Shown here in pieces: positions 6,600 to 16,374 of a stretch of DNA of 64,000 nucleotides (position 1 is the first letter of the stretch; every line of letters begins with the position of its first letter). The position numbers were made by a program, and so were the translations under genes. Source of the stretch: Calcarisporiella thermophila CBS 279.70. Lineage: Eukaryota > Fungi > Calcarisporiellomycota. The notes beneath the pieces are model-generated. The model did no database searches. It was given only the letters and a program-made list of their open reading frames with translations, and had not been told where the DNA came from. Where the stretch lies: contig NW_027192191.1 of assembly GCF_041956535.1 (NCBI RefSeq), positions 817,443 through 881,442 on the forward strand. The letters are read 5' to 3'.

Positions 6600-8256
6600 A
6601 TGTCAGCAAGAGGATCAAAAGTAGTGTTTGGTAAGAGAGTTGATTACTCTGTTTTTTTTTTATACACCACGATTAATTAGTGTCCAATTTTTCAAACTCC
6701 AGTCGGAAATATACCCTATGATCTGACAGAGGAGCAACTGACCGAAATCTTTCAAGAGGTGGGACCTGTGCAATCCTTTCGGTATACTGACATTATCTAT
6801 AATATTTATTGTGAGCTACGCTGATAAGTTTTTTTTTTGACATCAAGGCTAGTGTTTGATAAAATGACCGGAAAACCACGAGGATTCGGATTCTGCGAGT
6901 ACTATGATCCTGAGACTGCCGCGAGTGCTGTTAGAAATTATAGGCTCTGCCAAAAACTAGATTTAATTGAATATCCTTTTTTCTCTTGCGTTTTTATATT
7001 CTTAAACTTTGGCAAGCTGAGAATTATCAGCAGTCTCTCTGGACAAGAACGAACGCATTTTCACATACTCCAATCCCTATTTTTACGTTTTCAGGATATG
7101 GATATGTTTGGATAAGTTGGAGGAACGAAGAATAATTTTCTTTGCGGTTCCTACCAAATTTTTTTGCTTTTTTGATCATTATTGTTCTGTTTCTGGCTTT
7201 ATAATTTGGCCTTATACTGAACAATTATGATGTAGGAGGTCGACAGCTACGCGTAGACTACGCAGAGTTCGATTCTACTACCGGTGAAAGTGTTCCGTCA
7301 CAAGAGAGCGAGGTTTGTAGGCTTTTCTGGCTGACCCTGATCGTAGCATTCAGAATTAAACTTTTAGAGATTTTAATTAGTCGCGAGCAACTCCACCTGT
7401 CTTCCAACAACAGCAATCAACGCCAAGCTCAATTGGCTCTGCATCTACTCCAACACCCATGCCCACAACCGCTAGTCAATCGGCAACCGATTCTATCTCA
7501 CAGACATTAGCGGCAATGAACCCTACTCAGCTTTACGAACTAATATCTCAGATGAAAGTACGAGTTAATTTGCAACATAGATAGATTATTTATCATACTT
7601 CTACATTAATTTTTTGATATTGATGCTACTTTAATCAGTCCCTTGTACAGTCAGCGCCTGATCAAGCACGAAACCTCCTTACTCAAAATCCCCAGCTTTC
7701 ATATGCCATTTTCCAGGCAATGCTTATGATGAATCTAGTCGATGCTTCAGTATTACAGGTACGTCCGACTGACTCATTGAAAATATATAAAGTCTGTTAA
7801 CTATTTGAATATTATAGAGAGTGCTTGTATCCACACAGCAACCACCTGTTGCTGCTGCAGTCCCTCCAGGTTATCAAGGAGTTGATCCTGCAATTGGAGG
7901 TTATACCCCACAGCCCGCACCAGTTGCAGCAGCTCCTCCTCCTGCATCACTTTTATCAGGACTTCCGGGTGCATCGGCTGGTGCAGGACAAGATGTAGAA
8001 CAGCATAAGGTTAGGAAATAGTTCATTATTTCCCACGGATGCAAACATTTGACTCAACATATATGGATATAGGCTCTGCTAATGCAGGTGTTGAGTTTAA
8101 CTCCACAACAAATTGATATGTTACCTCCTGAGCAGCGTCAAATGGTGATGCAGTTGGTAAAGTATCCCGTTATAATGGTTTATTGTATAGAACGGCTTAT
8201 CTAATTCTTACTGCATATACGAGTAGAAAGCACAGATAATGGCAGGACAAACTTAA
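6600..8256 (+). CDS. RNA15: cleavage stimulation factor 64 kDa / Rna15 (RRM + hinge + C-terminal domain)
   Basis: [43 protein letters not shown]|[17 protein letters not shown], hinge [24 protein letters not shown]-terminal [22 protein letters not shown]. Confidence 0.93.
6940..7217 (+). other. non-canonical AT-AC intron in RNA15 (278 nt)
   Basis: The conserved AVRNLNNY is only restored by AAT T|ATAGGC...CCTTATAC|TG AAC; no GT-AG or GC-AG solution found. Confidence 0.75.
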
Positions 8257-8698: not shown

Positions 8699-9775
8699 TT
8701 AATGATGGCGACCATTCTCTTTTGTCTCTTCGTCTGTCTCTAGCCGTGATGAATCCACTCTCACATTACTTAATTTAGTGGGTACGGGTTCGTAGGCCTT
8801 TGCAGGCTCATCCGGCTTTGAATATAGGTAGGTGGCAATAAGCACGAAGCTTGCACCACTCAAAAAGTGTAAACTGAGGTGAAAATCAAGAAAGATGATG
8901 GAGAAAATACACGATACAATAATCGAGATGGAAGTAGCAAAACCTTTGAGAATGTTGTCAGCATATTTAACAACAAGCGCGACGATGATGCCACCAAGTG
9001 CCTGGCATAGAATAGCCGCCCATACGATGGGATTGTAGCCGTAAAAGAAACCGTCGTTCATGACTTTGTCTCCTTGAGTCCAAAGCACTCCAACAAAGAG
9101 GGCAGGGAACAAGGAGAAAAAGGAGAGCTGTACATTGCGGATCCAGAGTGAAGCGCTTGTGCCTTTTAACACCTTTTCAAAGTATACACCAGCAAGACCA
9201 GAGATGATGCAAGCTGTAATAACACAAATTAATCCCATTGTCGAATCTGTGTGATGGGCGATCGGCTCATCGTCAGATTTTTTATCATCGGCTGAAAGTT
9301 GAACGAGAGCAACTCCAACCGTTAACAGGACCAGTGAAAACCACTTGAAGCCCGTAAGACGTTTGTTAAGCATGATAACGGAGCATAATGCGGTAGTTAG
9401 AATTTTTAGCTGATAGGTGACTTGGAAAGTGGCGGCATCTAACAAATCCGCCGCTAAATATTGAAGGTTGTTCTGCACTGTATAAAGTGCCGCAGGAATC
9501 ATAAGCTTCCAAGCATCTGGTCCAAACACTTCGCTGTATAACTCTGATGCGGAGAATCGGCCTTTCTCCTTGATTTGGAGCCGTGCAGATGCGACAAGAC
9601 AGATGGTGAGCTTGATGATCTCATTCATGAGTACAGCGGTTGTTGTGTAATAAGCGGGGCCATCAATGGTGCGAGAATATCTCAAGATAAGTGCTAGCAT
9701 AGAGTTCTGCAATATAAGGGTCACTAATGAGATGTACTTTAGTGGCACCCCTCCAAATGTTGATGTGCCTGACAT
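8699..9775 (-). CDS. gms1: UDP-galactose / nucleotide-sugar transporter (SLC35A family), coding region intronless
   Basis: LKYISLVTLILQNS, IPAALYTVQNNLQY, TFQVTYQLKILTTA, GLAGVYFEKVLK, VVKYADNILKGFATS. Confidence 0.92.
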   Translation of the reverse strand: MSGTSTFGGVPLKYISLVTLILQNSMLALILRYSRTIDGPAYYTTTAVLMNEIIKLTICLVASARLQIKEKGRFSASELYSEVFGPDAWKLMIPAALYTVQNNLQYLAADLLDAATFQVTYQLKILTTALCSVIMLNKRLTGFKWFSLVLLTVGVALVQLSADDKKSDDEPIAHHTDSTMGLICVITACIISGLAGVYFEKVLKGTSASLWIRNVQLSFFSLFPALFVGVLWTQGDKVMNDGFFYGYNPIVWAAILCQALGGIIVALVVKYADNILKGFATSISIIVSCIFSIIFLDFHLSLHFLSGASFVLIATYLYSKPDEPAKAYEPVPTKLSNVRVDSSRLETDEETKENGRHH

Positions 9776-15411: not shown

Positions 15412-16374
15412 ATGATGAATCAACGACCTCAGCGCCTACTATATGGCTACTTTCGTTCTTCATGCACTTGGCGCGTGCGAATTGCGCTGGGATACAAAGG
15501 ACTCGAATATAAAACTATATACACAAGTCTTATTAAGGGCGATGAGGTGTGAATTATAGCTTTGTTGTGAGCCACTAGCATGAGTTATATAGAATTTGGT
15601 TATAGCAATCACCAGAATATGCAAAAATAAACCCCTGCAAACGAGTTCCAACATTAGTTGATGACAATTTTACACTAACTCAATCTATCGCTATATTAGA
15701 ATACTTAGAAGAAAAGTATCCCGGTAGGCCTAGCTTCTCTCTATTTCATCATATAAGTATTTAATGTGATCCTACACCTTATACAGAAAAACCGATGCTT
15801 CCAAAAGATCTCCATGCGCGTGCTCAGGTTTGTAAAATATGGAGATATCTCTTTATAGGGATTTTCATCTTTAAAATAGATTCGCTCTCTAGTAAATGTC
15901 ATTGCATGTGATATCTTCCCTTTTCAAAATACTGGAGTGCTCAAACACGCACTTATAGACCCATTCCGTAGAGAATGGGCACAAGAATGGATTATCAAAG
16001 GTTTCACTGGTAGGCTCTAACAGTATATCGGTATGGGTTATATATAATTATATTTGGTGTGTTTAGGCCTAGAGGACTTGTTGAAAAAGACGTCCGGCAA
16101 ATATTGTTACGGGGATGAATTTACGCTTGCCGATTGCGTGCTTGTTCCGCAGGCTTTCAATGCGTTTGTACGGTAAAGTGTTTTTTTTCCTTATATACAT
16201 AAGTAAATGTAGTTTAATTTAGATTACGACTTTAGCTATAGAGTTGACGCATCTCAATTTCCAACAATCAAACGTGTGTACGAGAATTTACTGACTATAG
16301 AGGCCGTGCATAAAGCTCACCCTTTTCAACAACCAGATTGTCCCCCTGAATTCCGCGAGCTCGATTCCTTGTAG
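15412..16374 (+). CDS. maiA: maleylacetoacetate isomerase / glutathione S-transferase zeta, multi-exon (missed by ORF track)
   Basis: [17 protein letters not shown] (GSTZ SSC motif), [62 protein letters not shown]. Confidence 0.92.

Follow-up and report, generated by a model that had tools for sequence, protein, structure and literature searches.

How is a core polyadenylation-factor gene spliced when one of its introns begins with AT and ends with AC, and a consensus donor of the minor (U12-type) spliceosome lies inside that intron? This question is raised by the gene at positions 6600-8256, on the forward strand, of a 64-kb window (the whole stretch of DNA analysed) from Calcarisporiella thermophila, a fungus of the phylum Calcarisporiellomycota. 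The gene is of the CstF-64/RNA15 type, and its RNA recognition motif (RRM) is split by a 278-nt AT-AC intron at 6940-7217, which the original prediction took to act as an autoregulatory switch. The same AT-AC intron is found in the genus Basidiobolus, at the same codon and in the same phase. We consider it probable, judging by its signals, that this is a genuine and old spliceosomal intron with the signals of the major (U2-type) spliceosome, and that the constrained elements in its interior act as cis-acting controls of a slow intron.

The CstF-64 gene and the ends of its third intron

The gene has nine exons (6600-6630, 6703-6781, 6848-6939, 7218-7312, 7381-7557, 7639-7758, 7818-8009, 8073-8156 and 8227-8256) and corresponds to the public protein VTP21DRAFT_354, of 299 residues. 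Exon-by-exon Pfam searches yielded RRM_1 matches in exons 2 and 3 (E = 4e-6 and 9e-6), CSTF2_hinge matches in exons 5 and 6 (E = 8e-9 and 3e-16) and a CSTF_C match in exon 8 (E = 5e-11), and the orthologs carry the name cleavage stimulation factor subunit 2. Given that the N-terminal RRM, the CSTF2 hinge and the CSTF C-terminal domain are all present, the gene product belongs to the CstF-64/RNA15 family. When the 40-residue hinge exon was used as a HMMER query, it retrieved a 299-residue protein (P0001) that is 100% identical over the exon and that NCBI names VTP21DRAFT_354, from C. thermophila. The sequence of P0001 equals the exon model presented here, the ...AVRNLNNY... junction included, and the AT-AC junction 6939^7218 is already contained in the public annotation of VTP21DRAFT_354. 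The full-length query in our searches was P0001; the exons were otherwise searched separately.

Exon 3 (6848-6939) ends with ...GCT GTT AGA AAT T, which encodes ...ETAASAVRN and supplies the first base of a leucine codon, and exon 4 (7218-7312) starts with TG AAC AAT TAT and completes that codon. The single-copy intron between them (6940-7217) is thus in phase 1, starts with ATAGGC and ends with TTATAC, the terminal AC being at 7216-7217. All donor and acceptor pairs with known or near-known dinucleotides were enumerated for frame, and AT6940...AC7217 is the sole removal that restores the contiguous, universally conserved RRM sequence AVRN|LNNY. Together with the junction in P0001, this enumeration bears out the claim that AVRN-LNNY is split by a 278-nt AT-AC intron. 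It does not bear out the accompanying claim that no other in-frame removal has splice-like ends: several further ones are possible, all of which delete or insert residues, and one of them, GT6930...AG7246, costs 13 conserved residues.

The intron lengths, in gene order, are 72, 66, 278, 68, 81, 59, 63 and 70 nt. The other seven introns have GT-AG ends and measure 59-81 nt, hence the AT-AC intron is 3.4-4.7 times their length, in keeping with the earlier remark that it is several times longer. The 5' splice site /ATAGGC (6940-6945; /ATAGGT in Basidiobolus) is GTAGGC with G1 changed to A, and GTAGGC serves as donor in a neighbouring gene at 15724, both of which are seen in the sequence as the original prediction had stated. 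Other donors of the CstF-64 gene include GTTAGG and GTAAGA, and the four known intron copies differ from the animal U2-type AT-AC consensus /ATAAGT by one or two mismatches. The donor therefore resembles a U2-type site and appears to match the U2-type consensus apart from the change at G1. On its signals, the intron would belong to the rare U2-type AT-AC (type II) class.

Two side observations concern these ends. The 64-kb window contains exactly two copies of the 12-mer TATAGGCTCTGC, one across the AT-AC 5' splice site (6939-6950) and one at 8068-8079, which is the intron-7/exon-8 junction of the same gene (TATAG|GCTCTGC). A weaker counterpart, CATAGGTC, stands at both of these places in B. 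meristosporus. The AT-AC donor thus looks like a 3' splice site, which may be chance plus the acceptor consensus. In addition, the GT-AG intron of the neighbouring gene at 15724-15786, which starts with GTAGGC and ends with ...TCCTACACCTTATACAG, has in common with the ends of the AT-AC intron the donor hexamer (bar base 1), a CCTAC branch-like motif and the 8-mer CCTTATAC.

Occurrence and conservation in Basidiobolus

The genomic loci of ten orthologous or paralogous proteins were fetched for intron comparison. In three Basidiobolus copies, from two assemblies, an AT-AC intron interrupts the same leucine codon in the same phase as in C. thermophila, which is a new observation. These copies are in B. 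meristosporus (L009:1332-1516, 185 nt, AAT C|ATAGGT...CAATAC|TT AAC), B. ranarum paralog 1 (L013:1336-1549, 214 nt) and B. ranarum paralog 2 (L023:1432-1612, 181 nt). The four known copies share the form /ATAGGY...YAATAC or TTATAC/, and in each of them AT at +1/+2 and AC at the end give the right reading frame. The spliced AT-AC junction is present in the public proteins P0151 (B. meristosporus) and P0261 (B. ranarum paralog 2). The public model of B. ranarum paralog 1 (P0082, K7432_007526, GCA_040143965.1, at L013:1001-2668) skips exon 4 and uses a GT nine bases upstream. This gene looks intact, and P0082 has the look of a typical failure of a predictor that accepts only GT-AG introns. The practical side is that such predictors break the CstF-64 gene. 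The B. ranarum annotation also holds a second, retained-intron isoform (P0032), whose open reading frame starts within the intron.

No intron exists at this site in six further early-diverging fungi, which are Umbelopsis (L010), Mucor (L011), Paraglomus (L015), Entomophthora (L016), Phlyctochytrium (L014) and Paraphysoderma (L024). The codons GTT AGA AAT, the three before the donor, are identical in all four intron-bearing copies and varied in the six intron-less orthologs. Metagenome contigs were scanned as well, and almost every relative in them is contiguous at the site. The exception is a eukaryote in which a GT-AG intron of 29 nt interrupts the same codon in the same phase (L033:1709-1737, contig Ga0105047_10056143, AAC T|GTACC...TTTAG|TG AAT). 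Its locus is GC-rich, and the N-terminus of its CstF-64 shares about 70% identity with mucoralean proteins. In a second metagenome eukaryote a GT-AG intron lies four codons further downstream (L071:1610-1706, RRNLNGRE|FNGRTLRV), and from these two cases introns cluster in this RRM loop. Searches for further copies of the AT-AC intron gave no matches, neither with a degenerate core pattern in the metagenome contigs nor with the B. ranarum retained-intron reading frame and the Calcarisporiella read-through peptide as protein queries.

Given that Basidiobolus, which has an AT-AC intron at the same site, belongs to a different phylum, the intron is taken to be old. The simplest history is an old intron position with an AT-AC state shared by descent in two lineages, and loss of the intron in the others. 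Horizontal transfer between Calcarisporiella and Basidiobolus was considered and rejected, as a tree of 35 proteins (LG+C20), whose backbone is unresolved, does not join them.

The interior of the intron is conserved as well. Local alignments of the Calcarisporiella intron against the three Basidiobolus introns presented z-scores of 7.1, 6.7 and 4.0, with 0, 0 and 2 of 500 shuffles as good, and the control introns 1 and 2, whose positions are also shared, presented z-scores of -1.0 and 0.0. The shared blocks are colinear across the copies, and include GATTNAATTG and TATATTCTTAAACTYTG, the latter common with B. ranarum paralog 1 only. The block TTTTTATATTCTTAAACTTTG (6991-7011; local alignment z 3.2) is likewise common with that paralog. 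The core GAGAATTATCAGCAGTCTCTCTGGACAAGAACG (7019-7051), with the pattern GAGAA...CAGCA...CTCTGG.CA.GAACG and a small hairpin UCAG/CUGG, is identical to Basidiobolus at 25 of its 33 positions and alone reaches a z-score of 3.2. Within the three Basidiobolus copies a core run of 32 nt is invariant, while synonymous third positions in the flanking exons are only 48-69% identical. With Basidiobolus synonymous sites near saturation, the conservation of the core goes far beyond neutral expectation. The cross-genus similarity and the invariant 32 nt indicate that the intron is under selection. It probably does something, since strong constraint in two fungal phyla is consistent with an intron that has a function, perhaps a regulatory one.

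Downstream of the core, a Calcarisporiella-specific insertion (approximately 7052-7103) is followed by the GU-rich block ATGTTTGGA (7104-7112; GTGTTTGGA/T in Basidiobolus), which reads (G/A)TGTTTGG and is found in three of the four copies. A hairpin formed by GGAGGAAC...GGTTCCTACC (7119-7155) has a stem that is invariant in all four copies and a loop of 5-20 nt that is not conserved. Its pattern is GGAGGAA(C)-loop-TTCCTACC, then AA and a run of 7-9 U. We read the hairpin as structured, given that an invariant stem encloses a loop of variable length and sequence.

Several identities for the core were tried and rejected. It resembles the region of ACAGAGA, AGC and the ISL of U6atac by eye only: alignment to the genome's own U6atac and U6 gave z-scores that do not exceed 1.8 for Calcarisporiella and are near 0 for Basidiobolus, which rules out a U6/U6atac mimic. 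Conserved long-range pairing between the core and the exons was dismissed because the best duplex partners differ among copies. The core is not coding, as its frame is open into exon 4 solely in B. ranarum paralog 2 and meets stops in Calcarisporiella. Elsewhere in the genome, the core and hairpin motif do not occur above the control level, and the core is unique in the 28.2-Mb assembly (G000).

Splicing signals and competing explanations

The motif TACCAA (7152-7157), invariant in all four copies and partly within the 3' arm of the hairpin, is a likely U2-type branch region, on account of its position and its likeness to the yeast UACUAAC, from which it is one base away. It is followed by a U-rich tail (7158-7215) without AC or AG, and the 3' AC at 7216-7217 is the first AC downstream of it. 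The distance from TACCAA to the 3' AC is 18-28 nt in Basidiobolus and 60 nt in Calcarisporiella, where about 40 nt (roughly 7171-7210) have been inserted. In all four copies the stretch from TACCAA to the 3' AC is free of AC and AG. This would fit choice of the first AC after the branch, of which U-rich composition explains part (P 0.06 in Calcarisporiella).

The genome does possess minor-spliceosome small nuclear RNAs (snRNAs), which the original prediction had proposed searching for. U11 (53.1 bits) and U6atac (47.6 bits) score over the Rfam cut-offs, and candidates for U12 (44.4 bits) and U4atac (42.9 bits) fall just under them. The U12 candidate has GAGTAAGGA, the box that pairs with the branch site. 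The U6atac candidate (G000:C2:193832-193964; L003:1501-1633) reads ...GATACGAGTCGAGAGATGGTTGGCAC..., and human U6atac reads ...GAAAGGAGAGAAGGTTAGCAC...; in this alignment the candidate shows no obvious AAGGA box, the element that pairs with U12-type donors. The motif ATATCCTTT is enriched in the 28.2-Mb genome, with 686 occurrences on both strands versus 415 in a reversed control. The strict pattern ATATCCTT...TCCTTAAC...AC has 17 sites versus 7 in the control, and most of the 17 are compact introns, 66-130 nt long. In genuine U12 introns of this genome, ATATCCTT stands at +1 and an exact TCCTTAAC 6-16 nt before the AC.

The CstF-64 intron has AT-AC ends in common with these introns, but is without ATATCCTT or TCCTTAAC in the right place. 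Its donor, /ATAGGCTC, mismatches ATATCCTT at three of eight positions, including the critical +4 to +6, which are GGC or GGT and not TCC; the Basidiobolus copies have four to five mismatches. No U12-type 5' splice site /RTATCCTT stands at the exon boundary, and no TCCTTAAC branch site lies in the last 45 nt, where the best match has three mismatches in all four copies. Given that neither the donor nor the branch signal sits where the genuine U12 introns of this genome have them, the intron does not fit the U12-type class.

A perfect match to the U12-type donor consensus does lie inside the intron, as had been predicted: ATATCCTTTT at 6971-6980, which breaks the frame if joined to AC7217, reading GA|T GAA CAA TTA TGA and ending in a stop. 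The chance of ATATCCTTT in a given 278-nt strand is about 0.2-0.35%, which is unusual and improbable, but the motif was noticed post hoc. The ortholog alignment that had been suggested gave a divided answer, in that the position and the AT-AC ends are kept in Basidiobolus, while the perfect internal ATATCC donor is found only in Calcarisporiella. At the place homologous to ATATCCTTTT, B. ranarum paralog 2 reads ATCTCCTTT (one mismatch) and B. meristosporus reads TGTCCACTA, and the sequence is deleted in B. ranarum paralog 1. Most likely, judging from these comparisons, the internal ATATCCTTTT is not a working U12 splice site.

These results bear on the three-way switch of the original prediction, in which U2-type AT-AC splicing would compete with U12 poison splicing from ATATCCTTTT and with intronic polyadenylation, CstF-64 itself binding the U/GU tracts. 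The improbable consensus donor, its counterpart with one mismatch in one Basidiobolus paralog, the minor snRNAs of the genome, the conservation of the GU-rich block GTGTTTGG/ATGTTTGG and of the U-run, and the precedent of CstF-77, where a conserved poly(A) site in an intron with a weak 5' splice site mediates feedback (PMC3708835), all speak for such a switch. We nevertheless regard it as unlikely. The U12 donor is missing from two of the three Basidiobolus copies, and the last 45 nt of the intron contain no U12 branch site, where genuine U12 introns of this genome have a perfect one. The internal acceptor TTTTCAG is present, ending at 7094, but falls within the Calcarisporiella-specific insertion; U-rich runs are likewise present at 7159-7200, but most of the tract at 7170-7210 is a lineage-specific insertion too. 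The proposed pairing of the intron ends is at chance level (-9.0 versus -8.1 +/- 2.5 kcal/mol for shuffles, 94 of 300 as good), with none in the Basidiobolus copies. Because the donor is unconserved, the U12 branch site absent, the acceptor lineage-specific and the pairing at chance level, the idea of U12 poison splicing is weak, while the more general one, that a gene for a 3'-end factor has a weak intron under regulation, gains some strength from the conservation.

Slightly less probable still is an atypical or degenerate U12-type AT-AC intron dependent on the minor spliceosome, perhaps aided by U11 at the internal ATATCCTTT. Its termini are AT-AC, it is retained only in two lineages rich in U12 introns (PMC10639083), and TTCCTACCAA, 18-28 nt from the 3' end in Basidiobolus, is loosely like TTCCTTAAC. 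Set against this are the GGC/GGT at donor +4 to +6 in place of TCC, and the branch-like motif, with its three mismatches and, in Calcarisporiella, its distance of 60 nt to the 3' end. We also know of no case of cleavage 31 nt upstream of a bound U12-type donor. The very strong conservation of a 32-48-nt core, and of a hairpin followed by a U-run, could alternatively reflect an independent non-coding RNA, a small nucleolar RNA or other small RNA, with the intron as its host and with AT-AC ends that would be incidental; introns of housekeeping genes often host small RNAs. This we doubt about as strongly as the switch. Rfam searches of three introns, made to look for a known RNA family, returned no match under E = 0.05 and no family that recurred, the introns show no consistent C/D or H/ACA boxes, the U6/U6atac likeness is not significant (z <= 1.8), the motif has no second copy in the genome and RNAalifold finds only two hairpins of 4-6 bp. 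An artefact, be it an assembly error at both ends, a transposon in a dead allele or a pseudogene, is very improbable, with nothing found in its favour. The 278-nt intron, the RRM exon and the hinge exon occur once each in the assembly (G000), and the proposed search for other copies of the 278 nt, or for an intact RNA15 elsewhere, found none, which excludes a multi-copy element as well as a dead allele complemented by a good copy. None of the other exons is damaged, three Pfam domains are recognised in them, and the same AT-AC ends stand at three independent Basidiobolus loci in two assemblies.

The genuine AT-AC intron with major-spliceosome signals, which we hold to be probable, would work as follows. 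The intron would be removed at 6939^7218 by the major spliceosome, the terminal C in place of the usual G compensating A1, as this pair does in yeast and in the vertebrate SCN4A/5A introns. The branch would form in the TACCAA region before the U-run, and the first AC downstream would be the 3' site. The 33-nt core and the hairpin would be cis-acting controls, with the 3' arm of the hairpin, which overlaps TACC, tuning access to the branch site. An intrinsically slow intron could thus be a rate-limiting, tunable step in CstF-64 output. Unspliced RNA meets a stop at 7113, and its product has no RRM strand beta-4 and no complete RRM.

Some points weigh against this interpretation. The intron is known from only four copies in two genera, its junction rests on public gene models (P0001, P0151 and P0261) and comparative sequence, and its U2 dependence is inferred from sequence alone. 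The 60 nt from TACCAA to the 3' site is far for fungi with short introns. As for the structure, RNAalifold finds two short hairpins (4-6 bp) with 0 compensatory pairs; the fold of the whole intron has a z-score of -1.9. U12 introns are abundant in both lineages that have kept the AT-AC intron (see also PMC10639083), and the ATATCCTTT of Calcarisporiella corresponds to ATCTCCTTT in B. ranarum paralog 2, so U11 or the minor spliceosome may have some role.

A more speculative extension, which we put forward only tentatively, is that intron-bound CstF-64/CF IA (cleavage factor IA), or another RNA-processing factor, determines whether the RNA is spliced productively or whether the intron is retained or 3' ends form prematurely. 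The AT-AC ends, the core, the GU-rich block and the branch-site hairpin would then constitute an ancient sensor, predating the split between Calcarisporiella and Basidiobolus, that sets the dose of a polyadenylation factor, and the AT-AC ends might be kept in order to slow the second catalytic step.

Related systems and neighbouring genes

To our knowledge, U2-type AT-AC introns are essentially undescribed as constitutive introns outside animals. A survey of five species counted 24 of them, about 0.003% of introns, with none in Arabidopsis or C. elegans, and the class has been proven for SCN4A/5A (PMC1557818). Like the human SCN4A/SCN5A introns (Wu & Krainer), the CstF-64 intron has AT-AC ends and a U2-like donor, is without U12 signals, and has borders conserved over a long distance. 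The known U2-type AT-AC introns are almost all animal, with a strong /ATAAGT consensus (as cited in PMC5029451), whereas the C. thermophila intron, if rightly classed, is fungal and starts /ATAGGY. It further differs from them in being 3-4 times longer than its neighbours and in its strongly conserved internal sequence. Yeast, without a minor spliceosome, splices an AT-AC intron nested in RPL30 (PMC5029451). That intron is likewise fungal, handled by the major spliceosome and unlike /ATAAGT in its donor, but it is a side product of 1-2% inside another intron, whereas the CstF-64 intron is the only productive route of an essential-type gene.

The closest regulatory parallel is CstF-77 (su(f)/CSTF3), where the intron that mediates the feedback combines a weak 5' splice site with a conserved poly(A) site (PMC3708835). 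In both cases the gene encodes a core 3'-end factor and contains an unusually long, conserved intron with a weak splice site, here the AT donor, which makes feedback plausible by analogy. The subunits are different, however, and the conserved elements of the CstF-64 intron are unlike an AAUAAA/GU-rich site; the one hint of a comparable isoform is the retained-intron P0032 of the B. ranarum annotation. A further comparison is with the U11 snRNP-binding splicing enhancer (USSE), in which a U12-type donor motif inside an intron is likewise not itself spliced as U12. Verbeeren et al. in 2010 reportedly described it in the U11-48K and U11/U12-65K genes, where tandem, deeply conserved motifs are said to activate an upstream 3' splice site. 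The CstF-64 intron has a single perfect motif, the next best being ATATTCTT 25 nt downstream, and it is unconserved in two of the three Basidiobolus copies.

In the present case, an intron that its signals place in the U2-type AT-AC class is kept in two fungal phyla, at one and the same codon of a gene for a core polyadenylation factor. The case bears on the upkeep of non-canonical termini, on how the major spliceosome handles introns with A1 and a last C in vivo, and on possible self-regulation of 3'-end factors via a slow intron in early-diverging fungi.

A further side observation concerns the surroundings of the gene in other fungi. A TMEM208/SND2 gene lies directly downstream of CstF-64, tail-to-tail, in Umbelopsis (L010), Mucor (L011), Phlyctochytrium (L014) and Paraglomus (L015). 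This pair is conserved across fungal phyla; in the C. thermophila window a minus-strand open reading frame lies downstream of CstF-64, at 8699-9775.

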